From Klebsormidium nitens (Eukaryota > Plantae > Klebsormidiophyceae): 64,000 nt of DNA. Position 1 is the first letter of the stretch; every line of letters begins with the position of its first letter. The notes beneath the pieces are model-generated. The model saw only the letters and a program-made list of their open reading frames with translations, ran no database searches and had not been told where the DNA came from. The stretch covers positions 54,133 through 118,132 of the forward strand of contig DF237098.1 of NCBI GenBank assembly GCA_000708835.1, in the 5' to 3' direction. Positions 2,816 through 46,192 of the stretch are shown here, piece after piece. The position numbers were made by a program, and so were the translations under genes.

Positions 2816-5800
2816 TCAATTGTCGCTCCCGAAATTAGCCGGCAGTTCTTCTGAGAAGTACGCCATAAGGCCGTTGTCCAGATGTAGGACGTTCTTGTAT
2901 CCGTCCACGACTAGGTAGTAGGCAGCAATCAGCGACCTGCACGTTAAGGGGCACTGATTTGGAACCGGGTTTCGAAGCCGCTGGAGACTTTGATAATAGA
3001 GCAAGGAACGCGTTACAGAACTAAGACTGTCCTTTTCGATCTGCGGATTTCGACATCCTAAAACGGAGACAAGACCGAAACCCAAGTTGCCACAATAACA
3101 ACGAAGCGCCACGCTCCTTTTGATCTGAGTCGGTCGCATGGCCTGATCTTGAAACGTCTTGATTCTTTACATCATCGGCGAGCACACAAAGATGTCGGCA
3201 TCAGTACGGAATGAGGGAAGTTATGGGAAAGGTGATCAAAGCCTGGAGGAATGTAAACGGAGAAGAGAGGAGGGCGAGGCAGATCACGAGCAACCGACCG
3301 GTCTCTGCATTACATGTTTGAACAGAAAAGAAGCGAAGCTCTGCCAAAGGAACCTTGTGAATCCACAGCCCGAAGCCCCCTCGCAACTTCTGGTGCGTAC
3401 TAGCGAAGCTACGAAGCATCTATTCTTGTGGAGCACCGTCGGTCGGTGCTTCCACTCGCTTCACTCAGGAATCGGACTCGAGGAAGCAAGGAGAAAACTG
3501 GGGGCACGAAAGGGGTCCATTGTGGAGATCAAAAGCTGCTCATCCGGATAAAGTTGCTTCACAAGCGGTTGGCGGCGGCGCCGAACTCCTGAAAATTTGA
3601 GCCCTTGCTGGTCATGCCCCTCAAGATCGTTTGAACTTTTGGAACCGGACGCGGACACCGGACACCGGACACCGGAATCGGAACCGGAACCGGAACCGGA
3701 ACAAGAACCGGAACCGGAAGGTTGACAGGTGAAAAACGGGTCGCGCTTTCAGGCTCGCTATCGGAGTTCGCGGCAGCAAGGAATCTCCTACCGGAACACT
3801 TGTCCACATAGAAAACATTATTCAATCCGGTCTACCAGAAACGGGCGGCAAAAGTGACTTTCCGCAGTACGAACGACCAGAAACGCAACGATGGAGAGCA
3901 ACACGGGAAAGCAGGACATTCCATGAGAAAAAAATATGCACACGCTAGAAGCGAGCCGTACCGTGATTGCTTTCCCTCTGGAAAGTTGGCTGAAGGCCGT
4001 GTGCTCCCCCCTGCCGTGCACGCCACAATGATCTTGGCGTCTTTCTCCGGGAAGGTCGCCCTCACATCTATAAGAGAAGCAGATCGTGCTGGTCAATCAG
4101 GGCATTGCAAATTTTGCAAAGACTTTGTAACCAAGCTTTTGGCGTCCTCAGATAATTGGGGTAGTTAAGGCTAACGCTTGAACTCGGAACAGACCGGACA
4201 GTCAGCTAATGATGATCAAAGAACAACAATGAAGCCGCACTCAGTAATCCCCTCCAGATGAGGTCTAAATCATTAATAAGCGCTGAGATGTGCATTTTAT
4301 GACAAATTGCTGGCACAAGCGCAGCTCGAGCAATCACCCTCCTTCGAGCCCCTTGATTAAGGTTGCCAACCTGAGACGAATGCACAACGGACCAGCTTCT
4401 TCAGCTAAGGTCAGAAGCCCACTCTTTCACTACGCCTGCTTGTTCCTAGGGCCCCAAGACAAGGCCATGCTAATTCCCAACAATAGACGGAAACTTTCTC
4501 CTCGAAGCACCCTCAAGAAGTTGGCTGTTGAAGTTCGCTTCCACCAAATCATTGATACGTTTCTACAAGCTGCATTATGTTTGGTTCACTGAACCACTTC
4601 TTCCGAAGAAGAAGGGTGTCGAGACTGCACAAATGCTGTCACCAAACTCTCATGTTTCAGCTCCCCAAACGTCATCAAAGCAAAAAGACGCATCCGTCTC
4701 CTGCTCACCTTCGATGAAGCTCGGGTTCTCCTCGGTCCCCTTGAAGATGCCAAAGAATGCAAAGCCCGCACGCCGGATGATCTTGTAGGGTGTCCAGTCT
4801 TGGATCGCTCGGTACAGCTGTACGTTGCTGGAGTCCTCAGGGTGGGCCTGGGATAAGGATACAGACCCTCAGACTTTTAAGCACAATCGAAATAAGTTGC
4901 ACAATTCGTGGCATGATGTCACAAAGCCTTCCTCAAGATGAAATCGATCAGCTGCATCCGGTAGCTTCCAGTCGGCTGTCTATGTACAGAGCTGCCTATT
5001 GTTGGACATGCGGAACGTGCGCGCGATCTCTCAGGTATCTTAAGAATCCCCAATCTATGTCATTGGAGGCAGAAATTGCGGTACCCGTCAGGCATCAAGC
5101 AAAGGGTATGCGCTTTCATTTTGGAAGTCACGCTCTACCGTCTCGAATGGCCGCCGCTTACGCCAACAGGGGTGGAAGCAATTGCACACCGACACCAGAG
5201 ATTCCCAGCGACTCCAGCCAGCAACCGCACTGGTTCAATGCTGGTTCACTGCCTTTCTAGAGCAGTCTCTCCAGGCATCACAACTGATACCAGACACAGC
5301 AAAGTAGGAACCCACCCAGCAACACATCGTCAATGAGTACCCTTTAGATTTGCTGCGGTTATGTAGCATCTGCTCATTCTCAACCTGAGAGTACTCAACA
5401 TCAGATACAAGCACGAGGAACAGTCGGTCCCAGAAGCTCACCTCTTTGTAATCATAGTCTGGTCGAACGTCCAGAAACCGGTAGCCCTCCTCGTTGACCA
5501 ACCGCCTTGCTTCTTTTGGGGCGACGGAGCGCACATTGGCATCGACGAGCACTTTTCTCTTGGCGTCCCACTTCACCTCCGCTGCAGAGACTACGAGGTA
5601 ACGTCACCACCAGGACGTCAACATCATTGCGTTCCCTTCCTCTTTTCTTTAACGACTTCTCCCCGTTTTTGGCGTCCAGTCATTCCCACATTTGCTGACC
5701 CTCCTGTGAACCTTGTTTGACAATAGGAAGGAAAGGGGTTGTTTCCTTTTTGCAGTTTTCCCTCTTCTTTGTGTTGGTGGCAGTTAAGGTGCTCACTTTC

Positions 5801-7528
5801 CAACAAAACTAGACCAAACTAGACCAAAGTTAAGGAACATGATTGCGAAACGGCAGTTAAGAATGAGAACCAGCTAAAATCTCTGAGAAGATCTAGACTG
5901 TGAAGTAGGGGCTGCAGATCTGCCATTACTTCTTGTGCAACTTTGAAGACTGATGTGGTTTCATATTGCTCGGATACCCAAAAAAATGGAATTATTAAGC
6001 CCTCGCAGCTCAGTGTGCCAGTCATCAAGCGCCGCCAGACTTTAAGAATAAAAGTGACCGGCTTTTTGGGGGGCCCTCAACCTTGCATTCAAACGTGCAA
6101 ACATTTGCAGCATGAGCGAGGGCGTGAAAGATGGTAGTCAAATTAGAATCACGAGTGCATGGGCAAGAAACCTGCGGAACAGGGCCAGAACAAGAAAGGC
6201 GGTCCATTGCAAGAACTTTCCTTCAAATAGGGTACTCTAATATCTCAACTTCTTAGGCGGGGATGACAATGCAATGCAAAGACTAGAAACTTTTCAACAA
6301 CTGGGAAACCCCAAGCCAACGGCCAACAAGGTCCTCGTCGTCAAAGTGATGGGGTGCTTAGATTGATGATTGAGCGGGTCGTAACACAACAACATCAAAA
6401 AGGGGTACGCACGACAAGCAATCTCTGGGGAATCACATGAGAGCCACAGATAATTGGTCTTCAGAACAGGAGGACTCCAAGACGCATCGGAAGGTGTATG
6501 GATTGAAATGCTCATGAAAATCCAGTATGGTGTCTGCTTCAAAGAGCCGCGACGAATCATGACGAAATCATTTGAGGAAGATTCTAAAAAGGAACTTGCC
6601 AAGTACCACCACCAGTGAATTGGAAAATGAAAAGTGAAGTACTGCAAAGTTGACAGGTCAGTGCATTTTGATTCTCAGAATTGCTGTCAATCAGCATTGC
6701 AAGCTAAATTCCGCGAGACATGTGTCAGCAAAATAAACAGCATGCAGAATGAGCTTCAAACTTGTTACACACACCGAAAATGTACCGCCAGCTCAATCCT
6801 AGCCAAACGTCCACCTTCACTTCCCTCACACACATTGCAAATTGGAATAACCTTAAAAAACCCTAACACAAAGCATCAGCATTATCTTCACTTGAAAAGC
6901 CAGAAAGCGGGTCATATCAGAAACTAACAACAGGATGTCCGGTTTACCTGATCTCAAAACAAACGTAAGGGAGACGGATTGAGTAATTGGTCACATTGGT
7001 GAAAGGAGATTCGTATTTTGAAGCATCTCATTTGCTGGACTAGCTGTGTTCGGACGCTGCTTTAGGTCAGCTGGATACAAACTATCTCAAGAGAGATGTC
7101 AGATCTTGTATTGACACCCATTGGGTGCATGGCTTAACCGCTACGGTCCTTAAAATACTGTATGTAGATGATAAATGAGCACTAAAAACTTAGAGTCAGC
7201 AGACGCTGCTTAAGAGCTGCTTGTGTCCAGCATTGTCCTTTCAGAAAACAAACCAAAAGCAAGACCAAGTAAAAACAAGCAGACGCTAAGACTCACCAGC
7301 CCTCTCTGGCACAATGGCTGCTCTTGCCGTCTGCTTTTGCCGTGGCAATTGGCGGCTACACTGCCTCCCTGCTGGTACTCTCCTTGCGCCTGCCAGAAAA
7401 TGTGATTCCCCTAAACTTGGCCAAGCGAGCGGGAGGCTCCCGTTGTGGTTGCTTTGCTGCCTAGGAGCGGTCTGCAAGGCGATGCTTCCAAACAAGGCGG
7501 CCCGAGTGGCGGCAATTGACGTCGCCAT
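2816..7528 (-). CDS. STR14: Plastid rhodanese-like protein (STR14-like), 5 exons: ~7528-7297, 5581-5442, 4847-4709, ~4067-3962, ~2937-2816
   Basis: Spliced reading: transit-peptide-like MATSIAATRAALFGSIALQ... / EVKWDAKRKVLVDANVRSVAPKEARRLVNEEGYRFLDVRPDYDYKE / AHPEDSSNVQLYRAIQDWTPYKIIRRAGFAFFGIFKGTEENPSFIE / VRATFPEKDAKIIVACTAGGSTRPSANFPEGKQSR / SLIAAYYLVVDGYKNVLHLDNGL. GT-AG junctions have compatible phases. The motifs LDVRP, RRxGFAFFGIF, GTEENP, KIIVAC, PEGxQSRSLIAAY match plant STR14 as I recall it. Confidence 0.9.
3640..3722. repeat. Hexamer microsatellite (GAACCG/ACACCG)n in an STR14 intron
   Basis: Directly visible: ggaaccggac...accggacaccggaatcggaaccggaaccggaaccggaacaagaaccggaaccggaa. 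Confidence 0.85.
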
Positions 7529-8575
7529 TTGGGCGGTCTTATTCGAAGGAGATCCTCCGCACAAACACTAATTTACAACCGACAAACAGAAAAGTTTTAC
7601 TAGACAAAAGTGAAGCACCCAGCTTGGCTTGCGCCTCTATCCTTCTGGAAGCTCTAGATTTGTGAGGAAGCAACTTGCAAGCTGCATCCTCTTTCACAGC
7701 TGTAGCTCTAGCTTCGTTAGTGAGAATCTTATATTGCATGGGGGGGTCTTTTTCAAGAACATTTACACCGTCGGATTACGATCCAGAGTTTATCTGACGT
7801 CTATCATCGAGCACACGAACCCCCCGCCTCGAGTGCGTGGAGGGAACAGATAATTACGGGTCTAGCTAAATCTTGTAGTTACTATAACCAGTTTGATTCC
7901 TGGTAAAGGCGTGCTTAACCGGGTTCAAATGATACTCAGATGACCTGCGCGCGCGGTCGCTGGATCCTTGGCGGTTGAGGGACCGTGTCCAACGAAAGGC
8001 ATCGATGTACCGGTAGACCTCCAGGCGTTTGCAAGTGCAAAGTGGCTGGTTAGCTCAGTCAGTGCAATATGTTGTCTTTTCAAAGGGTCTAAGCTCAGAA
8101 TTACAGTACCTAGTCTAGCCCTTCATGCACTGCAGTGGATCATCCGCTTTGATCCTTCGATTTTTGAGCATTTATGACATCATTTTTGATACCGCGTTGA
8201 TCAACACGATAAATGGAGGATGAATTCAAAGATTACATCATCGGCATTGTAGGCCAACGTTTTCTTCCAAGAGCGCTGAATAGCGAGTCGTCTCTCCTGG
8301 GATAGATTGCGCCAATGTCCCTGGCAGAGCCAAACACGGCCAGCTGCCGCATCTTCTCAGTGAGGGTCAATTTACACAGACCTCTTCCTCCAGGAAACAA
8401 AAGAAGAGTTTCCTACATTGCTTTCAGATTTTGAGGAGGATGAGGAGAAGGAACACGAAGATCTGAGGAGGGTGCACCTTGATACCCCAGCGAGATAACC
8501 AGTCAGCTTGTTTGGAAGGAGCGCTTTCTATCAATTCCCAATAAGCAGGCGGCATTGCTGCCGGACCCCTGCAAA

Positions 8576-11500
8576 ATGGGGCTAACCTCAGCGAGGCCCT
8601 CAGAAGGAGGGAGCGCGACACAATGGCTCTCTGCAGCCACCGTGACGATTATCCTTATGAACCTCACCGGGATGCTCCAGGCCATCAGCGATCAGCTGTT
8701 GCCCTCTGTGTTGCACGAGGTGGCCGAGAGCTTTGACGTCACGCCAACGGAGTTGGGGGGAGTGCAGGCTGTCCGTATATTTGTGTCGGTAAGGAGGGGT
8801 CTCCTGTGCAATTCTGCAAAGCTGAGATGCAGGGGCGTCACGAGTGCTTGAATCACCTCTTTCTTTGTTTGCACCGCCACTCTGGTTTTCTCAACCTTGT
8901 TTTCTTGCTCGACACATGCTTGCCACAGGATCAAAGGGAGTGACATTGGTTTTTCGTGACTGCTGGTAATTCGGTTTAGCGTTTGGCGAGTCTTTGATAC
9001 TATAGAAGCATGCCATGGGTGCAGCATGCAGTAGTTGGGAAATACTCTATAGCGACCAGCTTATAAGATTCTTTTGCCGCTTCAGCCTATCAGCATTGCT
9101 TGGATGCCACTGAATCAAGTTAAGTTCTCAAGCATACCTGCAGATACTACCTTCTGTTAAGAGGTTCTCTTTTCTCAGCAATGCCATCATGGCCAGGGCA
9201 GCAGCATCCGCATGCCACTTTTTAAACCTATCAGCTTGAAGGCCTTGGAAAAGAGCTTCAGCAGTCTGCACCAAACCATATTCTGTGCTCAGTTGCTCAA
9301 GTGCAAAGGCGCTGCAGGCAATCTGTCCCTGGTGATCACCATAACTGATTCAGCTTGAAGGTCTCAGAATACAATTCTCACAGCAGCCAATTGCGGATGA
9401 GGTAAGCATTAGCATCGTAGGCTGGGCCCTCAAATCATCGTTTTACCCACAGGCGTTTGCATCCCTGATCGCTGCATACCTGGTCAGCATGAAGGTCAAC
9501 CGCGCGCGCATTGTAGGAATGGGCACCTTGCTGTCTGGCATCACCGCGGCAGGGGTTGCGCTCTCCTTTCGCTACGGGTACATGATGGTCTGGAGAGCCA
9601 TTGATGGACTCGCCCCCGCACTGGTGGTGCCAGCAGTGCAGTCAATCATTGCAGGTGCGAGGCTTCAGCTCTTTCATCCAGACATATAAGGTCTTTAGGA
9701 AGCAGATCTGGCCATGTGTTAGATTCACAGATCTGTTGGCGAGCTAATGCTAGCATCAATCTACCCTATGTGGTGTGGCCAAAACAGTTCAAACCAGTTT
9801 AGGCAATTATTTTGAGCTTGAAAGCTGATGCTGTAGCAATTGGGTCCACCAGTAGGGTCTGTAGGGTAAGGTTAACAGAAACCTTCCAGCTGTGCTCTCT
9901 CTTCCGGGGATGCAGTCAGGCATTTCAGGTAAGAAGCTTCAGACGGCGTTCCTGTAGGAACTGGATTACTGGTGTGCGAACTTTGATGTGGAAAAAGTGG
10001 CTAGCAGATGCATGCAATGGTAAATAGGAATCTGGATGATATGAACCTGCCAACAGCATATGGCACCTGCACTAAGAAATCGGCCGACATTCACCTGAAG
10101 CAGCAACCTGCATAGGTCATACACTGCTTTTGAAAACAAGAGTATTACGTTCGAGGGCTGTGAGTAGTGGTAAAGATCAGCGCGTACCAAGCACTGTAAT
10201 CGAAAGCATGTTGGCAGCTCGGAGGTCCGAGCAGGCAATCTACTTTTCTAGCGTCTCAACCTAAGAGGCGGGATGGGTGATAAAAACTCTGAGGTGACTC
10301 CTAGGATAGCTCTAAGTAATTGACGTTCTCCTATTGTTTGCAGATTCCTACACTGAAACGGAGCGAGGCAAAGCGTTCGGATTGTTCTCCATCTGCTGGA
10401 GTCTGGGGAGGGTCGTCGGCAGTCTCTTTGGCACTATGATTGCCAGTGGCAAAGGTGAGAACCATTCTGTGTCGTCTAGTGACTTTGGAGGAAACTGACT
10501 CCTCTCACGATTAGACCAGAGCACTCAAATATTAGGTCCGCCTTGCAACACCTTTGTAGCAGCTCTCGACAGTACCACGGGCTCTCCAATTTAGATGGCC
10601 CCAAGGTCCGTGGAGAATTAGCCAAGTCCTAAAGTCCGTTTCAAATACCTTTTAAAATCATCACAACTTCGACGAAACACTGCTAACGCCCCAGAACATG
10701 TCCTGCGTTGAGCACGTTTAGGAACTCCCTTGCTAGAAGGACAGGTCCCTTTGGTTTTTGACCTCATCTTTGATCGGATTGTATAGCTCGAATTTTGCCT
10801 TGGTTCTACCTCTGCTCTGGAGAGCTTCGAGGGCGCTGCTCGCTTCTTTCAACCCTGCTTGCATTTCGGTGATCCAGACAGATTGACCGCTTGCGCTTTC
10901 ATTCAATCCCTAAGCCGACGTTATTGTTTACTTCGCAGTGGGAGGGTTCGAGGGCTGGCGTGCCGCGTTTTGCATCATGTCCTTCGGCGCGGTCTGCCTG
11001 GGCATGCTCGTCATCACGCTGGCGTCAGACCCGTCACAGCCGTCAGGCAAACGTCAGCAGCAAGAGTATGAGCGGCTGGCCAGCTCCAAGGGCAGCATCA
11101 GCCTCAATACGAAGCAGATTGAGGACACGAATGCAGGTAGGGAAAGACGTCGCTTTTGCATCCTGCGTATCAACGAAAGGTTCGCAAGCTACTTCTCAAA
11201 ACCAACCCCGTGCTGTTCTATCTCGACTCGACTGAAGCAGCTGAAAAGTAAGTTTGCCGCTCAATTCAAAGATCAGCGATAAGGCACCTGCCAGGCGGTC
11301 CGCTTATCTTCGCATTCTCAGCGGCTGTCGCCGACCTTTTGACACCAGCCTGCTTTGCATCTTCTTTGCAGACACGTCTGCGTGGGGTTGTGTCAAGAAG
11401 CTGGGCGGGGAGGTGCGCGACGTGTGGCACGTCAAGACTTTCCGCGCGATCGTCCTGCAGGGAGTCGTTGGGTCTTACCCCTGGCAGGTAAGACGGTTCG

Positions 11501-32325: not shown

Positions 32326-32580
32326 AAGATGTTCATATGTCATATCTCTCGGCCGTTTCTAGGCCAATCGGGCACTCTCGATAGCAGCTACAACCAAAGT
32401 TTACCCCACGGAGGGCTTACGAAATAAGGAATGGTAGCGGGGTTCCAGTAACCCGGCAAACCTGACCGTAAAACATCTAGCGTTCTGGAGATTGCTACCA
32501 GCATTCAATGCCTCAAATCAAAGCTCAAGAACGAAACTCGCCGAAGCACTTGTTCTCTCTGCCCAGAGCCGGAAGCTAGG

Positions 32581-32677
32581 GAGAAGCTCAAACGAATCAC
32601 CTTCCAAAGATGATAACTGCCCAGAGCCGGATCGCTCGGGAGAAGCTCAAACGAATCACCTTCCAAAGATGATAACT
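32581..32677. repeat. Direct repeat GAAGCTCAAACGAATCACCTTCCAAAGATGATAACT, two copies 3' of the GH10 gene
   Basis: The same string is present at ~32583 and ~32642. Confidence 0.8.
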
Positions 32678-32734
32678 TATTCAAAGGAAACCTGTGCTGT
32701 AACGCTAGCTTGACTCGCCGCTGTTGCGTGTCCG

Positions 32735-35700
32735 TTACGCTCCCTGGTAACGCCCCGAGGCGCAGGTGGCGTGGCCGTTGTCAAACTGACCGCACCCCTG
32801 GCCGTCGCAGCAGATGAAGCCGGAACCATCCGGGCCGTAGCACTGCGGCGACAAAGAAAGCGGTTTAGTCACAGGCAGCGATCATGGAGTGATAGTCCGA
32901 ATGACTCGACCATGGAATAAGGCACCTATCTTAGACTCGCTCGGCCTTTCCCAGGCCCCGTATAAGTAGGCAGTGCGCCTGACACACAAGTTTCTTCACA
33001 GAGACGTAGGTAGTACGCTCTTAGTAGTGAGAAATTTCGTCAAGATCCGACGATCGAGGGAGGCAATGATAGGGAGGAGGACGCGTGGCATAAAAAATGG
33101 CCCAAAAGCCAGTAGACCGGAACGGAACAAAGAAACCTGAAGGAGCAGGGGCCGGAACGGCAAAGTTGAACGAGGAAAAACAGGTAGGAGGCGGTTCCCG
33201 TTGCACTAACCTGGTTGGGGAAGGGGCTCTGGAAGTCGCAGAGTCCGCCCGCTGCAAGGACGGAACGACCCAGCGGAATCAGTGTCAGTGTGTGGGCTCT
33301 TGAGCTTGAGCAGTCAAGATAGGTCACACAAAACAGTCCACCGACAGCCTAATCTGGTACGCCTTTCCTCTGTAGGCTGCCAAACCGATCCCGCAAACCC
33401 GTTTTCCATCTGAAGTGTTTATCGCTAGCAGCTCGAAGCTCCACTTTCATGTAGAAAGATATGTGCACTACCTGGACACAATTCCGGGAAAACGTCCGTT
33501 AACCATTCAAGGTTAGGCAAATATCCCAAATGCTAGAGCCACTGACCTGCGCTCGGGTTGGGAACGCCTCCTGGTGCCGGGGTCGGGTTAGCCGGGGCGG
33601 GTGTCGGGTTAACCGGTGCAGGAGTCGGGTTAACGGGTGCCGGGGTCGGGTTTGCGGTCGGGGAAGGGGTTACTGGGGTTGGGTTAGTGGGAGCCGGAGT
33701 GGGGTTAGAGACCGGGGAACCAGGGTACCGGTTGCTGGCACACGTGGCACTAGAGCCGGAGGCGCCGCCGCAGCCGCTAGTGTCACAGCAGACGAAGGAA
33801 TCACCGCCGGGGGAGTAGCACTGCAAAAAGTGGTTAACAAGGGTTAGCGACCCGGTCAAGGCGTGTACTGCGAAGAGGTTTCCTTGCATGCATATGCTGC
33901 GGAATCTTCTTCCGGAGCCCACGTATGGAAAGGGGCTTAGCACTGGCGAGCAGAAGAGGCTAGTTTTTACCGGTCAGATATTGAATTAGCATACAATTGT
34001 ATACGACACAGGCTGTCGTGACTTGGAACAAAACTGCATCTTGTAGAACGGGTCTGCAGCCTGCAATCTGGAAGCAGATAAACAGTCGTGCCGTTGTTTA
34101 ACCCAGGAACTCTAACCCACCTGGTTAGGGAAGCCCGGCACTCCGCCACAGGTGCCACCTGCACACACAACGTAGCAGGTTACGTCAGCTCCTCCAAGCA
34201 AGACAATCAATGGTGACGTCAGCTCTCGAAAGCAAGGGGATAATCACAGCTGTCAAGTAGACTTCAGTGCAGAGCTTCACAGCTGTGTTTTTATTGCCGC
34301 CTTACGAGTCCATAAGCACGGTTGGAACCGTAAGAACAGCAAATTCGGTTAGTCGGCCTCTTCGACCGAGGCGCTGCTTGCAAGATCAGGGGCTTAACGT
34401 CGAGCATGGCATTATAATCAAGAGCTAGTCCTTAACCTAGCTTCGGCTTTCCAATATCCATGAGTACGATGCGAATCGCAAACAAGACATTGCAGACGTG
34501 AGACTGAAAGGTTTTTTTTGCAGAAGCAAAACAGGTCCGCCTGCCGTCTTTGACCCTCAACAACTCACCCCTTCGGTACCGCTGAATAGACAGGGCAACT
34601 TTCGGATTGATTACGAGTACGTGACTATGTGCTGACGCCACACAGCTTGTGACTGTTGGGCGACTAACCCCCTACTAACCCCCGTTGAAATCGGGAAAAA
34701 CAGCAGGCGTCAAAGTATCCTTTTATAGCTCTCCGTTTGAACGGGAACTTCAGAGTTAACCCGAAATGAGTTGTGGGGTTAGCGAACATACCCGCTGGGG
34801 AAGGGGCAGGGACGCCGCCAGGTGGCGCGGATGCTGCATAAGGAAAAGACGTAACATCTTATTTCCAAAGATCATTCTCAATTGATATGCGCACAGGGAT
34901 TTGAAGCCCAGTATCTCTTTCGCCGCTCTCTGCATCAAGACCGGGTGTCAGCACGAGCCTGCCGCTGATCGTTTTGCTTCCTAGCTTCTGATGCGACGAA
35001 GTAATCTCGTAAAAAATGCACTGTACATCTAGACTGGAACGAAATAGTTGTGGCAAGGAAACGCGGAAGCGTGAAGCCAATGAAGGTGGCGCATTTGAGC
35101 TGTTAAAGTAGACTTACTGGGTGATGACGTGGCAGTCGGGGTAGTAGTCGGACCTGCTGTCGGGGCGGGCGTGGCAGAAGAGCCGGTGAGGCTCAGAACG
35201 ACGTTCCTTTGCACTGCAAAAAGCGGAGAGAAAACTCTCAGTCACTAAAACTGCATCTGAGACGCGTTTCTGGTGTGGGTGTCTGCGAACAACATCTAAG
35301 ACACGTTTTTGGTATGGCGTGCACGCAGAAACTCCTCAGCAATGAAGTCCATTCTGCGCTCAAGACCAAGTCAGTGGCAGTCTGCCATCCCTCTACTCCG
35401 GAGCTTTTGGTGGCGACCTTCTAGCCTTTGCCTTACCGCTAGAAGGTCGCCACCAAAAGCTCCCAAGTAAAGTGTTCCTGCTGTTGCGGGGCATAGGTCC
35501 GCCTCCAAGCGTAGAGCCGGCGACGAATTACCTTCCTCTGATAAGAGCTCTTCCGTGGCGAGCATTTTGTGGAACACAGCCAGACTATCGCCGCGATTTT
35601 GAAACGTCACCGCCGTACTCACAATGTAGAGCTACTACCCGTTAGATCTGACGGTCCACCTTTTAGTGGCGACCACTCAGCGCAGAACCAACCCCGGAAT

Positions 35701-38700
35701 GTCGCTGCAAAATATGCAAAACCGGCTTCGACTTACCTCCCGGGGTCTCTGGGACGGTGAACGTCTTGGTCGTTGTGACGCCGCCAACGGTGATCCTCGC
35801 TTCGAAGTTGCCAAAGAAGGCGTTGAAAGTGGGGAGCCGGCCGCTGCCGTCCGTCGTGCCGGTTCTGGGCGGCGTAGTGAACTCGTTCTTGAGAGCCTGC
35901 GCACACGAGATTTTCAGCCTTAACCAACTTTCAAAAGCCTGCATCATCAAGCCCATCTACCGCAGACTCCCACCTGTCGTAGCTCAAAGCCTTCGACTAA
36001 GACTCGAACATTCCTTTTTCGTTTCGAGTCACTCTCCAGAAACTTCGACTAACATTGATTGTCCGGCACTTGGTAAGAATCTGAGACGGCTTTCACTTGG
36101 TAAGGTCTGAGACGGCTTTGTGGATTTGTTTCTAAGAGCCTACAGGAACGTCTCCGAACAAAGAACGAAGGGCGAAGAACAGTCGCGCCCCATAGCAAAT
36201 ATAAGTACGACAAGCAAAGGGAGCCAAAACCAAATGGACGCGTGGCACTGACCCCGGTTGCGGTCGTACTCCAATTCTCAACTCGTAGTTGCGAGTATCC
36301 AAAAGAGAGACAGGACGACGGTCGCCAGTCCAAACCAAGCCGAATCAAGGAGATTTGCGAGAAGCTTACCTGCACTCTCTGACCGGCGGCATTCAGGGTA
36401 AAGTCCAGGTTGACCAGGCACGCGTTGCACTGGCCGCCGTTGCGGTCATACTCCGACTGCGGCTGGTAGTTGTACCAGAAGAGGAAACCCTTGACTGCGG
36501 GATGCGCGAAGCACTCGCGGAAGATGAACTCGAGATAGTCGGCGCGTTTGTTGACGTCCAGAATGTTGACGTTCACTTCGGACATCCAGATGGGGATGCC
36601 GGCGCTCGCGACCTTGTCGAGGCGCGCGCGCAGCTGGAGGGGCTCGACTCCCAGGAATTGGCCCTGCAATCAAGACTGTTTCCTTTCAAGATCTCAGACT
36701 TTCAAAAGAGGCAAGCAGTACTGATACCGGAGCTGGCAATTCTGTCGAGGCGCTGACGCGATTGGAGGGACTCCACTCCTAGAAAAGGCGTCTGCAAGTG
36801 CTTATGGGGGTATAAGGAGAAGTCGTTTGTATCTGCTTTAGACCCGTTTTTAGAAGCGCGTGCGCAGTAGGACGTTTCGACGTCAGAGGATGCGCGAGAC
36901 TCGCTGGGACTAACTCTTAGGCCTTGCCGCATCTATTGGGGTCATATCCTCCACCATCAAGTGTTTCGGTCATATCCTACACCAAGGACTCATTTCTTCT
37001 AGCAATTGATTTGATGTGCCTGTGAACCCTTTTAAGCCCGTACAAGCAGATCACGGGAAGGCCAGGACGTCAGTCAGCAGCCCACGTGACGTCAATGCGG
37101 CTCATTACTGTAGCGTTTATTCGATGGCGGATCTTTCTCCTAGCGTTTGTTTTATATTTCTGTGAGGCTTTTGAGCTCAAGCAAGGACGCACCTGGAACG
37201 CCAAGATGTCGATCGGGAGCCCACGTGACGTCAGCGCGTTCAGCTGGTTCAGGTAAAACTCGGGATAGGCAACGGGATCGGAGCACGTCTCCACGTAGTT
37301 GTAGTCTGCGAAGGAAAAGGAGAGTGGTTCTTCGAAAGCGACACCTGGATGATCGAGGTTCTCCCAGTTCTTCCGTGTGCTGCAAGAAGGACTCTAGCGA
37401 AGGCCACGAGTCATGGAACATGTCTCGAGGTAGTTATGCTCCACGGAACCAAAAGCAAAAAGAAAGTGAAGGGGGGCGACACGTGAATAGATAATCCTCG
37501 AGATCAAAACTTGGTGCAGGTGTTGACAGACCAATGGACGTTGACGGAGAAAGTTAAGAGCGGCAACAGTCAATCCGGTACATCTCGTTGCTCAACGCAT
37601 GCGTCCGGTCCCCTTCGATCAATTCAGAATTGGAGTCAACAAGCAAGAGTAGATTCCACAGTAAGGACAAGGGCAAAATTCTCCTCAGCTTTTGACCTAC
37701 CGTTGAGGGCATTCTTCACGTTGGGGTCGATCGCCTTCACGGCGGGATACATCCAGTCATCGATCGCGTTTCCAAGCTTGTTCTCGTAGTAACTGCACAC
37801 GGAGGAGGACGGATCGATGAAAATTGGGGATATCCAGGTCTTGAGATTCTGAATGTAAGGTCAGCTTCCTCTCGAAAACAATCTTCCTAATCAGAATCAT
37901 AGATGTAGATTTGGCAGTCTCTCCCCAAACAATCTTCCTACTCAGACAGAGTCGTGTCTCAGGTTCTTCTGAAAGGGCCGTCGATTGAGCCCACTTTGTT
38001 ATGGAAAAGCCTAGCCAGATTAGCTCCTTAATAGGATGATTACCAGCGTCCACCTCAGTACTGTGCCTGTATCGCGGAACGCAACAAGCACATCCTTCTA
38101 TGGAGTAACAGCCGAGTAACAGCCAACTGTCGTGTCAAATTGGTTGTGTCGGGTTCGTTGTTCCTGAGAAAGACTCACCCGCCCTTGAACTGCTCGTTGT
38201 TGACGTCCCAGTGAATGACCTGCAACCAACATAAACTCAGGTTGTAAGCTTTCAGAACTATGGATTTTTATTGCTATTCCAAGATTCGCTGGGGAGTACA
38301 AGTATGCAATTAACCAGAGAAGCGACCTTTCCAAAGCACAGGTTCGGGTCTGGCAACTGTCAAGAGCATGCGACTCAAGCAAGGGAGGATTTTGACTACA
38401 ACCTTTAATGTCTCTGCTCAATCTCGTTTTGCGCCTCCACAGATCTCTAGAGGCAATTCCGTAATCAGTGCAAACGACAAGGCGCTTGAAACGGAAAGAT
38501 GCATTGCCAAAGCTACTATGGATCGGACCAGCCCTCCTATCAACTAAAAAGGTTGCTTGATGTATTTTAGGCCCACTCTTTCTTGGGGACGACTGACCCG
38601 CAGCTAGCGCCCCCTTTGTTTCCGTGATTACGTGCCTCAGTCGAAATTCGACATTGATCCAACCTTCGCCGTTCCCTGGTTTGGCCCCCTCTTACCAAGA

Positions 38701-41700
38701 ACCAAGTTTCCGACTTTGTTTGATGCCCATTGAACTAACATGGTTAAGGGCGAAATGTTGCTGTGACTATCGTTAGAACTTACCCGTCCCTTGTAGTGCG
38801 ACACGATACTTTGGAGCCGCGCCACCATCGCCTTGTAGAGGTCGCTGTTGGGAATGCCTCCAGCGGTGCTTAGAGCGGCGACCCAAGGCTGCGCAAGGAA
38901 CGCACTTTTTTGAGGAGAAGGCCTGGCGTCCTTACTTACTTCACGGATCTTTTCTTTGTGTTTATGAACTCTCAGATTAACAGTCTGTTCCGGGGGTTTG
39001 CCCCCGGCGGCGCTCAGGGCGGCCACCCAAGGCTGTAAAAAGCGCGCAAATGCTCAGGTTAGGAATTTCCTCTTTTGTATGTTGCAGATTCTTGGAAGCC
39101 GTAGGGTTTCTGAGTACGAGAAAGCCCCCGGCAGTGATCAGAGGGACAACCGAGAGCTGCACACATCGCGCAAAATTGTAGCCGTTCATGGTTTTTAGAA
39201 GGATTGGGCTTTCGGGGTTTGAGAATAGTTTAGGGCTGTAGCAATACAGGTCGCTCAGGGATCTGCCAAAAGCTGGTCCCAGATTGACAGTCAGAGGGTG
39301 CCAAGTGCACGCGGATTCACACGTTTACTATTTGAGGTGGCAGCTGATCCTCCTATGCGTCTCGCTTCCAGAAGCTAAGAAATCCTGCAACGGGCTTGCA
39401 GGAATTTCAGCTGTTGCTAGCCAAACGTAGACTGCTCTGGCTTGTGAAGACCGCCGAGCAAACCACTCGGAAACCCTAAACGCACCAAACTAGAGCGGTG
39501 AGCCCACCGAAAATACGTTCGGGACGTCTCAGAAGACTATGTGCAAGGGCAAGCTTGTTTGCCAAGCGTTGCTTAACTATTTTTGCTGAGCGTTGCTCAA
39601 CTATCTCTTCACCAATGTTGTTGCACAACATCCTTTGGGACATCCCGAGCGTAATCCAGGTGGGCTCCCAGCTCTAGTTTCAAGGCGTCAAGAATCAATC
39701 GTTGAGCGCTTCTTGAACTTTCTAGACCGATTCTAATCAGCAATTGGACGTCTTGAGAGCACGAACTAGAGCGGGGAGCCCACCTGGATAAGGCTCGGGA
39801 TGTCCCAGAAGATGTTGCGCAACAAAATTGGTGTAGACATAGTTAAGCAACGCTTAGCAATCAACTTAAAAGTCCTGAAAGCACCAACTAGAGCGGGGCA
39901 TTTCACCTGGATCACGCTCGGGATGTCCCAGAAGATGTTGTGGCCACGCACGGGAATTCCGTTCTGGTCGCAAAACTCGAGCATCGCGTCGGGAACGCTG
40001 TAGTCGAACGTGGGGCCGTTGGGGTCCGTGAAGTACCACTTCATCTCGTTCTCAAACACTGCAAGCCGAAAACGACGGGTTTAGAGACGGGAATGGACAT
40101 AGAAGCAGAAATGATTGACCGGAAAGGAGAGTCGGTGATGAAGCAAACCGTGTAAACAACACTTGGTCTCATTTGCGAAGACTACAGGCCAGAGTGCCCG
40201 TTTGAGAACATCAATGGCAAAAGGAATGGAGTTTAAGAACCGGACAAAGCACCAACAAAGCAATCTGTGTCCCTGTCGAAGGCTTCAGGATAAAGCCAAC
40301 TGGATATTTTGACGGTCTGACAACCAGTTCCGCTTGGAAAAGTGGAAGGATGGAGAGCAGAATACGAAAAAAAAATCTAGACAAGCTGCGGAGTTTCTGA
40401 GACGGCCACATTGACTACACTCTCGTAACAGCAGTTACAAAGAGATCTGTTTTTCGCTGCAAAGGAGCAAAACTCCCTTTACGTACTCACCAGCTGTGTT
40501 GAAGAGTGACTTGAAGTAGTTCGCATAAGCCGGGGACGTCAGAACGAGTTGCTGAAGCGATCCTCCGAACGGGAAGGACGTCCGGGTCTGAGTGAGTTGG
40601 ACGGTGGCGCCGGACACGGGGTTGTTGCTGGCGTCAACGACCTGGACGCTGACGTCAGTCTTCCGGATCTGCAAAAGGAAGGGACGTCGAGTCGTAATCG
40701 ACGAGCAAGGGGTGTGGGGCGAGTAGTAATCTGCATCGGGCGGGGGCAACTAGGGGTGTCGGATGCTCACTTTGGTCTGTTTGGATGCAACAGAAAGAAG
40801 AGAAGTTTGAGTCGTAGGGAAAGTGGAGCAGAACCCAACGATTCTGGGCGTCAGCAAGATGTAAGCAGATTGATTGAATCACGGGTTTGGTTAACGACAT
40901 TCACCGCAACAGTGCGAACAGCCAGATTGATTTCAAATCCTCTGGCACCTAGATGATGGACACAGGATGCAAGCAATCTTGCTAGCACTGAGTGACTGAG
41001 GTCTGTTAACCAGGATGGTTAGCAATCCTGGGTAACCACTTGACGCGGCAGTCCAGGCAACCAGATCGTTGAAATACTGGTTCTTGGGCACCGAGGAAAT
41101 GGACACGGCGTGTACCCAGGCGCGAGTATCGAAGAATGGGTTACATTCTTGGTTAGCTACTCACCGCAGCAGTGCGGGCAGCCAAATCGTTGAGGTACAG
41201 GTTCTTGGGCACGGAAATGATGGAGACGGCTTACACCCGTAACGAAGGTTCGTTGACCGATATCCGGGCTATCTTGACCAGTTCGGTCAGCAACTTAACG
41301 CAGCAGTGCGGGCTGCTAAATCGTTAAGGTACAGGTTCTTGGGCACCGAGATAATGGAGACGGCGTGCAGCCCAAGCTTTACACCCGTAACAAAGGTTCG
41401 TTAACCAATACCCGGGCTATGTTAACCAGTCGATTAGCAACTTACCGCAGCAGTGCGGGCAGCCAAATCGTTGAGGTACAGGTTCTTGGGCACGGAAATG
41501 ATGGAGACGGCGTGCAGCCAAAGGTCCTGGTTGGTGATGCCTTGCAGGCGGACGTCGACTCTGTTGGGAACCGCTTGGATCTGGTAACCGGCGGAGAGAA
41601 GGGACCAGCATCCGACCTTGGCAACCAGAACCGCACCTGTGAAATGATACTTTCTCTTGTCAGATTCTAGATTATGGAGGTTCTGAAGTTTTGGGCTCAA

Positions 41701-44700
41701 AAGTGGACGTCGACTTTGTTGAGCACGGCTTGAACGTGATGAACCGGCGGAAAGAACCAACCTAGCAACTACGCTTCGTAGCTAGGACGGCACCTGCAAG
41801 CAAGAAGTTCGATGTTCTAAAGTTGAGGATGTGAATCGGAGAGTATCAGGTTCAAGACTGACGCCGACTCTCTAGAAACCGGCTTAGACTTCGCAACCAA
41901 GGGAGTGCAGGGGTCGGCAGCCGACCTTGTCGACTAGAACGGCACCTGTTGCAACCAGAATGGCACGTGCAAGGAACACGTTCTTGAGATGAAGATTTTC
42001 AATTTGAGAGCTTTGAAATTGCAGGACTGCATTGCTGTTGCAAAGTAATTGGAGCGCAAGCACCACCAACGGCAGAAGGAACAGTCACCGAGCAGGAATC
42101 AAGTGGGTCTTACCTGCACACACGTAGTCGCCGTTGATCACGAAGTTGAGGTCCATCTTGAACTCGGAGTTGGCGCCGGGGCCTAGTCGCACCCAGAACA
42201 GCACCTGCTGCTGCGAACCGACGGGGACGGAACTGCCCGGGAGTGTGAACGAGAAGGCCTTGAAATTGGCGTTGATGTTCGTCAGGCGCACGTACGGAGT
42301 GCCATCGCTGCAAAAAACAAGGCCCAAAACTTTCAACTGGAGAAACATACAAACGAGAAGAGAAGTGAAGTAGTTGGAAGTCTATCGCAATGCGAAGCGC
42401 CCGGCAGAGTGCAAAAAAAGAAGGCCTTGAAGTTGGCGTTGATGTTCGTCAGGCGCACGTACGGAGGGCCGTCGCTGCACAAAACAAGGCCCGAAAGTTT
42501 GGGGATATTCCATGATTCTGTTCCTGCACGCGACCTTCCTGGGTGGACTGCTTGATTGCCCGGGAGGGTGAGTGAGGAGGCCTTGTCGTTATGTTTGATG
42601 TTCGTCGGGCGGACATACGGAGGGCCGTCGCTGCAAGAAACAAGGCCCCCCCAAAAAAGGCCGTCCCCCGGAATTGGATTCCAACGACGGACCGGATAAG
42701 TGCCCAGGAGAATGAATGATATTGGATGACAAGGTCTCGAAGTTGGCTTTCGTGTTTGTGCTTAAGGCTAATGAACGGAGTACCGTCGCTGCAGAACACA
42801 AAATCCCAAATAAAGTTCTGCGGTGTTCGTTCGGAGATCAGTGTTTACGACGGGCAACAGCAAAGTGGCCACGAAAGAATGAAAGGTGTCCGACCTTTTA
42901 AGGGAGCCGCACACCTCGGTGAAGAACGTTTGGTCGGAGTCAAATCTCTGTCAACTCCCATATAAGCAAAGACGGAAAAGACGTGCCGACGACCGGGGAT
43001 GATACCCGCCCACCTCGTCCACTGTTTTTGTCGATTGACACATTTATGCGGATACTAAACGAGCACCGGGACGTCCCAACGACCGGGGGGGTCATCCGCC
43101 CACCTCATCTGCTGCTACACTTACCGGCTGTAAATTCTTAACCATTCGACTTCGCACTTCTGCGGTTACCCGAAAAAAACGTTTCGACGACCAGAAGGGA
43201 ATCGCCCACCTCGTCTCCTTATGAAACGACAGCTTTGGTATTCTGCTGATACCACAACAGCGACGAAAAAAGGAAATCGGGCGACTGCCCACCTCGTCTG
43301 TTGGAATGACAGGTCGCCATCGCAGTCGGGGAAGCAGTGCCAGTCGCCCGGAACCCCGCCGTTGGGAACGCCGGTAACTAGGTTGTTGTAGCCTGGGAGG
43401 GGGCCGGAGTTCACCAGGTTCGAGCACCACTGTCAAAGCAGAAGCGGAACGTGTGAGCTCGAAGTTTCGGGTTCCAAACCTGACACATATTCGTAATTCA
43501 GCGAGTAACTGGCGGAAGGGAAGAGGTCAGAAAACTGCGGTCGATTGATTGGTAGGGGGACAATTACAGAGGCTAAGGAGGAAGGTAATAGCAGGGGGTC
43601 CCGAATGTTAAGTTTGGAGGCAGCGGAAAGTCTTCTGCACTCGCAGTTTACTGCAGTTTCCAACTAAAAGAAAGACGCAGGAATTATCCTGGGGTAGAGA
43701 CACACGCTCGTCCGATGCGTCGTAACGGCGATCGAAGCGGTTGAACATTTGGTCAAGTAGTCAGAGCTGCCCACGGCTGACGGAATCAAACGGATCGGTA
43801 CGAAGACGGCTGGAGGACGGCTGATTTGAGTTTCTCCGTACTTCTAGCACCCAGCGACCTTGCCGTTTGATTGTTTGCGCATCCCAATTAGACGTTCAAG
43901 GACTCTGTTCTCTGGCCTGATCTTTGCTGGTTACATGCCTCCACTTCATTCAAACAGTGCTACTAATGGTTTCAGTAACCCTGAGACTGCTCCGCTCAGA
44001 CGACTGAAGGCGAGAGGGCTTCGAATGGCCCAAAAAAGCTGGGGGCTGTTCTCACCGAGCTCTGGACGGGGTCGAAGTTGGGGTTGAATGCAGCTGCAAG
44101 GGCGAACACGAGAGATGTGAATAAACGCGAGCATGTGCAATCAATGAGCATGTTTCCAGAGAGTCTCGAGTCGGACGTTAGGCACTCACCCGAGTTGATG
44201 GAAACCTTAAGAGGATCACTTGAAGCCCTCACGCTTTGGGTCCCAATATTTCGCCATTGCGGAGGCAGTGTAATCGGGGGCTAGAAAGCAAGCGCGGGTG
44301 TCCCACTTTTCCGTTTCAGATGCACACGTGGCGGCTCCTAAGATCTTGATTTTCCTTTCACAAACGTGGACTGGGATACGACACCTCAAGTCACGCGGAA
44401 TAACCACTGGAGTCCGAAACGGACAGCGTGAAATGCCGGGTGCTTGGATGTGTCCAGACCAAACACGTGGAGATGAATTTCTCAACTGCCAGCTTTGCAA
44501 TCCTTGAAAGTTTTCAGAAGCTTAGATTTGCCGAAGCCTCCTTTGCCGTAACTAGGTTCACGTGATAGTGCATAAACAAAGGGAAGCAGCCAGCAATTGC
44601 AACCACGTCAACGAAGCCTTGAAGATACACGTGTCCAGAACCGAGCACTTACCAAGCGGCTGCTGGTGTAAGACCGGGTCGGCTTAGCTAAAGCCTTAGA

Positions 44701-46192
44701 ACCCTAAACCCTAAAATCCTAAAAACCTAATGTCAAAGGGGTTTTGCCAAGTCACTTTCAGAGGCCAACGTGAGGTTGAAGGAGTGCCAGTGTACGACAC
44801 AATGGAACCGAACGATATAGCTCTCCTTGAAATGTTTATACTGAAGTAAGTAGGAAGAACAAGCGTTTGCAGAAATCCAAGCACTTAGAGATACTTCGAT
44901 TTCATGACGTACGGGTAAGCGCCATGAAGGGTAACATCAATACTTCACCAAAAACCTAAACATGCTCCGCACTCGTACCCTAACCCCCTAAGCAACCCGT
45001 CACTGTTAACCTTCAAGGCTCTTAACCTTCATAAATGCCACCAGGATTACTTACGGGGTGTCGCCGGAGTAGCCGGTGGCGGGTTAGACGTTCCAGGGGA
45101 CCCGCTAGGGTACCTCCCGGAGGCACACGTGGCAGCAGCGCCGTTGGACAGCCCGCACGACTGGGTGTCGCAGCACACGAACGTGGTGCCCGCATCTCCG
45201 AAGCACTGAAGAAAAGGGGCGAAAAAGGTGTTGGCCGTGCCAAAATCTGAAATTTCCAGGTCACGAATGTCAATGAGTGAGCCTTACGTTTGTGTGAAGA
45301 GGGAAGGGGTTAAATGCAGAGGAGAGGGGAGCATGACACCCGATTCGTTAAATGGGCTGAAGTTGAGACACATCACGAGTCAGATTGATAAAAGCACGGG
45401 ATCATCTGAGACGGGTCCGTATGCCCACACAACGGCACCAAAGGAGGTGTTGTTTACGACAAACCTGATTGGGGAATTCGGGGTTGGCAGAGCAGTCACC
45501 CTGGGCATCTGCAAGCAAGAAATGAAACGAACAGGCTTAGTGTATAGAGCGGTTGCTCAATTGTCGGAACCGTGTGCGCCTGAACAAAGATAACCCTCTT
45601 TGTGCGGTTGAGGAACGCAGTATCCGAACCATGTGCGCCTGAACAAAGACAACCCTCTTTGTGCGGTCAAGGACCGCAGCATTTCCTACTCTGACACAGA
45701 GGTCCACATACGATGCAGATTTCTTGTGGACTTCTAAAGCCAATATAAGGTACGAAACTAATTTATCCCCTGCGTCCCAGCTCAGAAAGTGTGGGGACCG
45801 AGAATTGTTCGGCAAGAAAGCTCGAGTTGGGTGGTTCCACCCACCAAAAGTAACCCGTTCATATGATTGCCTTTAGGACTGAGGGGCTCCCTTTGTCAAA
45901 CAGTCCAAGTCTGTGATCATCGTCGGACCTTGTAGTTTGAACCGCGGTCGGAGACCTTACAGAAACTTACCCTCCTTGCTAACGCGCAGATGCTTAAAGC
46001 CCCTCACGAAACATACAGCCAAACTTTTGCAAGCGGATCTCACTCATAAAAGTAATCTTCCACGATCAATCTGTAAAACTGGGGTTCAGCACCCAAGACA
46101 GAAAGCGGAGTCTGGGCGATAAATCGGTCTGACTTACAGGCAAAGCTCGTACTCAGTACCAGTGCAACGAGGGCAAATGCGGAAGCCTTCAT
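32735..46192 (-). CDS. Secreted GH10 endo-1,4-beta-xylanase: signal peptide, Cys module, CBM22/CBM4_9-like region, GH10 domain, two further Cys modules with P/T linkers; about 18 exons
   Basis: Signal MKASAFALVALVLSTSFA. Plant GH10-like motifs: AVLVAKVGCWSLLSAG; IRKTDVSVQVVDASNNPVSGATVQLTQTRTSFPFG; VFENEMKWY; PVRGHNIFWD; IVSHYKGR; HWDVNNE (acid/base Glu, ~38193); GIPIWMSEV (nucleophile Glu, ~36580); RECFAHPAVKGFLFW. Stop TAA at 32737-32735 after CASGRYQGA. Confidence 0.92.
35400..35463. repeat. Perfect 26-bp inverted repeat with a 12-nt loop in a GH10 intron
   Basis: ggagcttttggtggcgaccttctagc (35400-35425) and gctagaaggtcgccaccaaaagctcc (35438-35463) are exact reverse complements. Confidence 0.95.
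45567..45685. repeat. Two ~60-bp tandem copies in GH10 intron 1
   Basis: gaacc(g/a)tgtgcgcctgaacaaaga(t/c)aaccctctttgtgcggt..agga.cgcag occurs twice in tandem. Confidence 0.85.

Follow-up and report, generated by a model that had tools for sequence, protein, structure and literature searches.

Small cysteine-rich modules on Pro/Thr-rich (P/T) linkers are the standard means of targeting wall-degrading enzymes in fungi and bacteria, and the presence of one to several small modules on such linkers, at either end of a protein, is the classic arrangement of carbohydrate-binding modules (CBMs). Modules of the fungal-type family CBM1 start with QCGG and have four Cys residues, none of them forming a CC pair, as well as three coplanar aromatic residues, and hevein has the spacing CC-x5-CG. 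The glycoside hydrolase family 10 (GH10) enzymes of plants carry CBM22 N-terminal to the catalytic domain, and we know of no land-plant GH10 enzyme with small Cys-rich modules or long P/T linkers. The Cys order C-C-CC-C-C is that of knottins and hevein-like peptides, and the chitin site of hevein is formed by a Ser and aromatic residues in loop 3 together with an invariant Tyr in loop 4 (PMC5374622). Here, we analyze a stretch of 64,000 nucleotides from the land-dwelling streptophyte green alga Klebsormidium nitens (contig DF237098.1; hereafter the window, with positions counted from its first letter), in which one minus-strand gene for a GH10 xylanase carries three copies of a six-Cys module, named here the PNQCF module after its central motif. 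Judged from its sequences, this module is a real, mobile, and lineage-restricted accessory domain family without a detectable known relative, and its most probable role is to attach secreted proteins to the cell wall.

Three Copies of the PNQCF Module on One Gene

Searching the six translated frames of the window with the regular expression C-x6-12-CC-x3-6-C-x6-12-C gave exactly three matches, all on the minus strand and all in one gene (45125-45205, 33740-33820, and 32762-32842). Each of these cores directly follows an AG acceptor in phase 0, and one intron upstream of each lies a short exon of 38-44 nucleotides, which carries the first Cys and ends in FPNQ immediately before its gt donor. 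We refer to the two halves of each module as parts (or exons) a and b. A preliminary description of this DNA, made from the letters alone, had proposed three spliced copies of a C-x9-C-x9-CC-x4-C-x9-C module on a single gene, with a phase 0 intron after PNQ, a phase 1 intron upstream, and NPTPAP-type Pro/Thr linkers between the copies. The spacing is exact in all three copies, the intron phases and linkers are as described, and the copies themselves are borne out by pattern matches and splice signals, as well as by RNA in the case of modules 2 and 3. The exon b translations of the three copies are 55-58% identical in pairwise comparison, with 15 of 33 columns invariant.

The gene spans positions 46192 (ATG) to 32735 (stop) in 21 exons, and every intron is GT..AG. 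When the 21 exons are joined, the frame is open over 2544 nucleotides (847 codons), with a single stop at 32735, according to a local frame check. The encoded protein comprises, in order, a signal peptide, module 1 (residues 24-60), a P/T linker, a region of approximately 185 amino acids, the GH10 domain (residues ~271-648), a P/T linker, module 2 (residues 698-734), a P/T linker, and module 3 (residues 803-839).

At the N-terminal end, exon 1 (46138-46192) encodes the initiator Met and a hydrophobic stretch of 18 amino acids, judged by eye to be a signal peptide; it ends at a gtaagt donor in phase 1 and joins module 1 directly in that phase. With this exon upstream, the start of the gene moves to 46192 from the earlier placement at 45511. 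Exon 2 (45465-45508; phase 1 in, phase 0 out) encodes part a of module 1, from the first Cys to FPNQ, and its Cys, PNQ, and donor are kept at positions 10012-10041 of a paralogous K. nitens locus (L001, on contig DF237556.1). Exon 3 (45055-45205; phase 0 in, phase 1 out) encodes part b, with Cys 2-6 and the ending CASGRYP, and a short P/T linker. The region between module 1 and GH10 is opened by exon 3b (44056-44093), an exon of 38 nucleotides ending in NPNFDPVQSS, which has canonical ag/gt borders, keeps the frame open, and is conserved together with its splice sites at about 11283-11322 of L001. Three further exons between 41446 and 43429 (43429-43293, 42307-42114, and 41636-41446), placed from splice sites and frame, contribute approximately 170 amino acids to the same region.

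The GH10 domain is encoded by eight exons between 35737 and 40668 (40668-40491, 40058-39907, 38888-38784, 38219-38179, 37792-37701, 37305-37193, 36663-36370, and 35896-35737), the upper three placed from splice sites and reading frame, and those from 38179 down joined by RNA junctions. Two linker exons rich in Pro, Thr, Ser, and Ala follow within 34792-35213 (35213-35118 and the 42-nucleotide exon 34833-34792), both in phase 1-1 and both with RNA junctions. Part a of module 2 (GTCGGVPGFPNQ; 34121-34158, phase 1 in, phase 0 out) is followed by an exon that combines part b with an NPTPAP-type linker of 58 amino acids (33547-33820, phase 0 in, phase 1 out) and contains a tandem 21/42-nucleotide repeat at 33573-33652. 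Part a of module 3 (GGLCDFQSPFPNQ; 33211-33251, phase 1 in, phase 0 out) is joined to part b and the stop codon (32735-32842, with TAA at 32737-32735) on the basis of splice sites, frame, and an RNA junction. The 3' untranslated region occupies 32648-32734, as the transcript contigs of all four RNA runs considered below stop at 32648. Relative to the exon list of the preliminary description, the module exons stand, and two exons that it had missed are added: the paralogue speaks for 44093-44056, and RNA junctions for 34833-34792.

Transcripts and Splicing

Public sequencing runs contain approximately one-third of the words sampled from 32600-42599, which is the share expected for exons. From four of these runs, recorded as probable RNA and originating from four studies under two organism labels, we obtained transcript contigs of 2.4-2.9 kb with 99-100% identity to the window, some of them without mismatches. 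These were aligned over 32600-38599, with module 1 outside that stretch. The contigs are spliced, and thus they cannot derive from genomic DNA of this locus. They define ten junctions, all GT..AG on the minus strand (CT..AC on the forward strand), at 32842/33211, 33251/33547, 33820/34121, 34156/34790, 34833/35118, 35213/35737, 35895/36369, 36662/37192, 37305/37701, and 37792/38179, and it is these junctions that revealed the 42-nucleotide linker exon. Because the contigs carry the junctions of modules 2 and 3, both modules are present in the mRNA and spliced as predicted, rather than being absent from the transcripts.

The Host Enzyme Is a GH10 Xylanase

Two exons of the catalytic domain, searched singly against the PDB, matched beta-xylanase 7d88/7d89 best, at E values of 1e-13 and 7e-12, along with more than 40 other GH10 chains, in agreement with the initial assignment of the host as a xylanase. 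The nucleophile Glu lies in IWMSEVN, which aligns with the Glu of IWVTEYD in 7d88, and exon 38219-38179 contains WDVNNE, the acid/base Glu motif of GH10. Two exons of the region between module 1 and GH10, each searched alone against the PDB, gave nothing significant. This region sits where plant xylanases have CBM22, and by analogy of position it might be CBM22-like. The wall of K. flaccidum contains substituted beta-1,4-xylan (PMC5902652), and this presence of substituted beta-1,4-xylan in Klebsormidium walls makes an endogenous wall-remodeling role plausible: the gene product is probably a secreted GH10 endo-beta-1,4-xylanase that remodels the alga's own xylan-containing wall.

Carriers of the Module

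A 33-position profile of exon b, built from the three copies in the window, was run against 1.84 billion representative proteins with a cutoff of E <= 1e-3. It gave four matches, of which three (P0001-P0003) are true, all of them from K. nitens. The fourth, P0004, a bacterial repeat protein (E 4e-4), was dropped, since it lacks any single matching stretch and its score is a chance sum over repeats. Exon b of module 2 (region 1-40) found no homologous proteins in a search confined to proteins of 50-159 amino acids, and an alignment of a second, shorter subtype of the module (see below) gave one metagenome contig (L006) in a search for related loci. Because copies of the short type escaped the first profile, this census gives a minimum, and Klebsormidium plus a few environmental contigs is the range observed rather than an established limit.

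Six carriers are K. nitens proteins. P0001 (KFL_006070010) represents the wrongly annotated N-terminal part of a paralogous gene that lies at the end of its contig, P0002 combines a Cys-rich N-terminal domain and a PT linker with three modules, and P0003 has a signal peptide and two modules followed by a GDSL esterase domain (PF00657). P0005 consists of five tandem modules and nothing else, P0006 carries two modules with a NAGPA-type domain (PF09992), and P0007 has two modules with a domain of no named family; searches with the partner domains of P0007 and P0002 gave no assignment. On a metagenome contig of the Joint Genome Institute (JGI), P0008 and P0009 have two modules each, upstream of a VWA-coding region, and the metagenome contig L006, of 1.3 kb, holds a single open reading frame (ORF) with a signal peptide, an unrelated domain, and one module.

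Several details of these loci deserve mention in their own right. The public model of the paralogue, KFL_006070010 (L001:10001-11405), begins at an ATG that is out of frame within exon a, and it ignores two donors. An intact module results from the true exons, namely exon a (DAADCSAYPDYPNQ followed by gt, 10012-10041) and exon b (starting at 10296); the contig ends before this gene does. In the GDSL esterase KFL_002660170 (L003:4834-5068), the first module is 10 residues too long in the public model, which chose an upstream acceptor, and use of the cag immediately ahead of the Cys codon would bring PNQ and C back together. This module has GC in place of CC, which leaves five Cys, and it is possibly degenerate. 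The neighboring same-strand genes of P0006 and P0005 on K. nitens contig DF237115.1 (L004:1-3903 and 4001-8214, respectively) both carry modules of the short type, and additional module-like exons at L004:5066-5104, 6323-6409, 7144-7167, and 7298-7336 are absent from the public P0005 model.

Among the environmental sequences, L005:8001-9320 (JGI metagenome 3300060284; a 40 kb contig of 50% GC that looks eukaryotic) holds a tandem duplication of an intron-less two-module segment, and a coding region for a VWA domain follows on the same strand after approximately 0.5 kb. At L006:480-1121 (contig Ga0315919_1012034), the intron-less ORF of 213 amino acids comprises the signal peptide, a domain of approximately 150 amino acids, and one C-terminal module of the short type; the GGTGAYTGATG motif of this domain presumably recalls dirigent proteins.

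Conservation, Subtypes, and Mobility

Across the family, the module is 37-45 amino acids long and follows the signature C-D-P-x-S-x2-P-N-Q-C-F-x3-G-x4-C-C-x3,4-C-x8-11-C. In an alignment of 20 copies, six Cys and one Gly are invariant in every row that covers the column, the Phe after Cys 2 is nearly invariant, and PNQ is close to that. Two subtypes can be told apart. The long one reads CC-x4-C, ends in a CASG[RK]Y tail rich in aromatic residues, and is represented by the copies on the GH10 genes, by P0002 module 1, and by P0003 module 2; the short one reads CC-x3-C. The aromatic residues first described as conserved (the F of FPNQ, the F/Y before CC, and the Y after Cys 6) are so in the long subtype on GH10 enzymes, but not in the short subtype, which keeps only the Phe after Cys 2.

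Comparison of 33 module codons between the window and the L001 paralogue shows 25 identical codons, 6 synonymous changes, and 2 conservative replacements, with an alignment of only 57% across the intron that separates parts a and b. An excess of synonymous over conservative changes beside so poorly aligning an intron indicates purifying selection on the module.

In this gene, phase-1 introns flank every cassette made up of the two module parts and their linker, such that insertion or duplication of a cassette leaves the reading frame intact. Within the module, the phase-0 intron after PNQ is common to the three copies in the window, the L001 paralogue, the first modules of P0002 and P0003, and all copies of P0005 and P0006, and it is missing in P0002 modules 2 and 3, P0003 module 2, and the metagenome copies. 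This pattern points to an old intron, which would have spread with the module by exon duplication or shuffling and later been lost from some copies. The early suggestion of an exon-shuffled module thus finds support in the phase 1-1 cassette, in the unrelated carriers, and in the PNQ intron of many paralogous copies.

Searches for Known Relatives and for a Fold

We built three module profiles (A1, A2, and A3, from 3, 11, and 20 copies, respectively) and searched them against all PDB chain sequences up to E 10, obtaining either no matches or chance rows at E >0.6 (elastase, ICAM-3, and IgM); we take the PDB to include entries for hevein, WGA, CBM1, and tachycitin. Precomputed Pfam records list no family for P0001, P0002, P0005, P0007, P0008, or P0009, and for P0003 and P0006 they list only the catalytic domains PF00657 and PF09992, with the module region free of matches. 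Feature searches of the ESM Atlas, one using exon b of module 3 and the other a whole module of P0002, gave no usable match, and we found no description of such a module in the published literature on Klebsormidium in combination with CBM, cysteine, knottin, or hevein. The PDB profile searches, the ESM Atlas searches, and the Pfam records of the carriers thus agree with the original proposal that the module matches no named family.

AlphaFold models of a complete module of the long type (P0002:231-277, 47 amino acids) show two to four short strands; the first reached a mean predicted local distance difference test (pLDDT) score of 78, and a second run with a deeper alignment of 20 rows brought no gain (mean pLDDT 73). 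With this model, Foldseek against the PDB gave no match (best E 3.6), VIA-align against 48,161 chains gave no Z >=2, and a structure search of the ESM Atlas gave template modeling (TM) scores <0.45. The structural check suggested at the outset therefore returned no neighbor for a model that is only moderately confident, and for a model of 47 amino acids at such confidence, these nulls are uninformative on fold novelty.

A Putative Wall-Targeting Module and Its Alternatives

In the CAZy sense, a CBM is a contiguous, independently folding, non-catalytic unit within carbohydrate-active enzymes. The PNQCF module is delimited by linkers and introns, has a predicted fold with short beta strands (pLDDT 78/73), and is found on GH10 enzymes (in the window and L001) and beside GDSL and NAGPA domains, in agreement with this definition. 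Its placement at either protein end, on P/T linkers, in one to five copies, and on unrelated predicted secreted proteins, several of which are sugar- or ester-cleaving wall enzymes (GH10, GDSL, NAGPA), is the arrangement of CBMs. On account of this arrangement, we lean, by analogy, toward the reading that the module is a wall-targeting and probably carbohydrate-binding domain that provides a putative trivalent attachment of the xylanase, and we rate this as somewhat better than an even chance. The six invariant Cys would presumably form three disulfides, and P/T-rich linkers, probably O-glycosylated, would join the module to many unrelated secreted proteins, which it could then retain at the cell wall through binding to one of the wall polymers, in a CBM-like role. 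Three copies on the xylanase, one N-terminal and two C-terminal, would give avidity. In this scheme, we infer secretion, disulfides, and binding together with its ligand.

Several points weigh against this reading. In the short subtype, the Phe after Cys 2 is the one aromatic residue that stays conserved, and thus, judged from the alignment, conservation of the others is confined to the long subtype and a flat aromatic binding face is not family-wide. Some carriers, such as the VWA neighbor, the dirigent-like ORF, and domains of no named family, are not obvious carbohydrate enzymes, and they are just as compatible with a generic wall or protein anchor. Both AlphaFold models are of moderate confidence (mean pLDDT 78 and 73) and have no structural neighbor, such that the fold gives no functional hint. 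Finally, RNA covered 32600-38599, and the splicing of module 1 is supported by canonical sites, by a frame that stays open from the signal-peptide exon onward, and by the conserved paralogue.

A first alternative is an anchor that does not bind carbohydrate, but instead attaches to a wall glycoprotein through protein-protein contacts, or through Tyr cross-links or disulfide exchange, and acts as a general extracellular tag. The carriers differ greatly in activity, and some have no evident sugar substrate, as such a tag would allow, and family-wide conservation is limited to the Cys, a single Gly, a single Phe, and PNQ. No partner for such an anchor is known, however, the long subtype on GH10 has additional conserved aromatic residues, as in sugar-binding modules, and several carriers cleave wall sugars or esters (GH10, GDSL, NAGPA); we therefore regard this anchor as unlikely, albeit as an alternative to be taken seriously. 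The scarcity of conserved surface residues in the short subtype, together with the very small size and variable copy number of the module, would also be in keeping with a disulfide-rich spacer, or a stabilizing or solubilizing unit, that has no ligand and spread by exon duplication. Yet the non-Cys positions are under strong purifying selection between paralogues, every subtype retains the PNQCF motif, whatever its context, and the P/T linkers already act as spacers, which leaves this possibility with a low probability.

The C-C-CC-C-C order, shared with knottins and hevein-like peptides (PMC5374622), raises two further alternatives. The modules could be knottin- or hevein-like bioactive peptides (antimicrobial or enzyme-inhibiting) that are freed by proteolysis, with the carriers in part their precursors, and P0005, with its five modules and short linkers, does resemble a polyprotein precursor. 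Against such release, there are no dibasic or other processing sites beside the modules, the linkers are P/T-rich like those of CBMs, the net charge is not cationic, attachment at both ends of large enzymes is atypical of peptide precursors, and the PDB profile searches showed no sequence similarity to solved knottins or hevein, and we give this possibility little credence. Alternatively, the module could be a very divergent member of CBM18/hevein, CBM1, or CBM14 that sequence methods missed, given that its Cys order equals the first six Cys of hevein and that CC-x4-CG resembles the CC-x5-CG of hevein. The loop lengths differ, however, the Ser and aromatic residues of hevein loop 3 and the Tyr of loop 4 (PMC5374622) are absent, the PDB profile searches gave zero or chance matches at E up to 10, and there is no Pfam match on record, all of which makes this the least probable of the alternatives, and a very improbable one.

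Returning to the wall-targeting reading, a bolder form of it can be put forward tentatively, with confidence falling just short of even. In this form, the PNQCF module would found a new CBM family with its own or a very divergent knottin-like fold, would have spread by exon shuffling in the Klebsormidium lineage as a general device that fixes secreted enzymes (xylanase, esterase, glycosidase-like, and others) to the wall of an early land-dwelling streptophyte alga, and would in its long, aromatic-rich GH10 subtype be specialized for xylan or cellulose.

Repeats and Exon-End Copies in the Gene

The gene also contains repeats of other kinds. A 59-nucleotide tandem duplication (1.9-2 copies, 90-95% identity) lies in intron 1, at 45567-45679, and a second, unrelated 59-nucleotide tandem duplication (again 1.9-2 copies, 90-95% identity) at 32559-32677 spans the end of the 3' untranslated region where the transcripts stop (32648). 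Within 36700-42800, introns of the gene hold decayed partial copies of adjoining exon ends, including splice sites, on the minus strand at about 42800-42400, 41950-41890, 41375-41045, 39815-39785, 39040-38990, and 36800-36705. The 5' end of the exon that starts at 42307 recurs three times upstream of it, and the 3' end of the exon that ends at 41446, with its gtaagt donor, recurs three times downstream; the copies at 41375-41045 overlap a Tandem Repeats Finder (TRF) array of period 147 at 41231-41523; exons 40058-39907, 38888-38784, and 36663-36370 are each flanked by one extra partial copy. These intronic copies could be pseudo-exons or alternative splice sites, and the partial copy at 36700-36800 is unused by the RNA contigs that cover that stretch.

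Implications

If the wall-targeting reading is true, the targeting of wall-degrading enzymes by small Cys-rich modules would have been invented independently in a streptophyte alga that stands near the emergence of land plants. The module would then also be a candidate for a new CBM family and a possible probe for algal or plant wall polymers, or a compact fusion tag, a value that is limited until carbohydrate binding is demonstrated. The module is in addition an aid to annotation, as public models are wrong at it in at least two carriers (KFL_006070010 and the first module of KFL_002660170) because the PNQ exon is short.

Comparison with Known Systems

Compared with plant GH10 xylanases with CBM22, the Klebsormidium enzyme is similar in its plant-like catalytic domain, in both catalytic Glu motifs, and in the presence of a non-catalytic region N-terminal to GH10, but differs in its small Cys-rich modules and long P/T linkers. 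With knottins (inhibitor cystine knots), the module shares six framework Cys, two of them adjacent as CC, along with short beta strands in its predicted structure; however, it is repeated on large enzymes rather than being a free peptide, and has no fold match in the PDB or ESM Atlas.

The likeness to hevein/CBM18 (Chitin_bind_1) and to 6C-hevein-like peptides extends to a length of 30-45 amino acids, a secreted and disulfide-rich nature, the C-C-CC-C-C order (recovered both by the regular expression and in the alignment, as initially noted), a CG soon after CC, and the ability to be attached to enzymes or to stand in tandem arrays. In contrast, the loops of the module are longer (x9, x9, x4, x9), with C-x9-CC-x3,4-C-x8-11-C as compared to C-x4,5-CC-x5-C-x6-C in hevein (PMC5374622). 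Loop 3 of the module reads DTQS, DTSG, or DGQG (PGQ in the short type), and loop 4 has no conserved Tyr. The Ser after CC and the aromatic pair of loop 3 are likewise missing from the 20-copy alignment, in keeping with the earlier remark that the hevein aromatic motif is absent; the PNQCF motif is the module's own, and there is no profile similarity to solved hevein or WGA chains.

By analogy, the closest counterpart in architecture and presumed role is fungal-type CBM1, a Cys-stabilized module of approximately 36-45 amino acids that is attached to glycoside hydrolases, including GH10, via P/T/S-rich O-glycosylated linkers at either terminus. The four-Cys pattern, QCGG start, and three coplanar aromatic residues of CBM1 are, however, absent from the PNQCF module, and no PDB profile match links the two, such that, as initially noted, the module does not belong to CBM1. 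This comparison supports the view that what is new at this locus is the module family itself, and that what is familiar is the kind of accessory module, borne on P/T linkers, that it represents.

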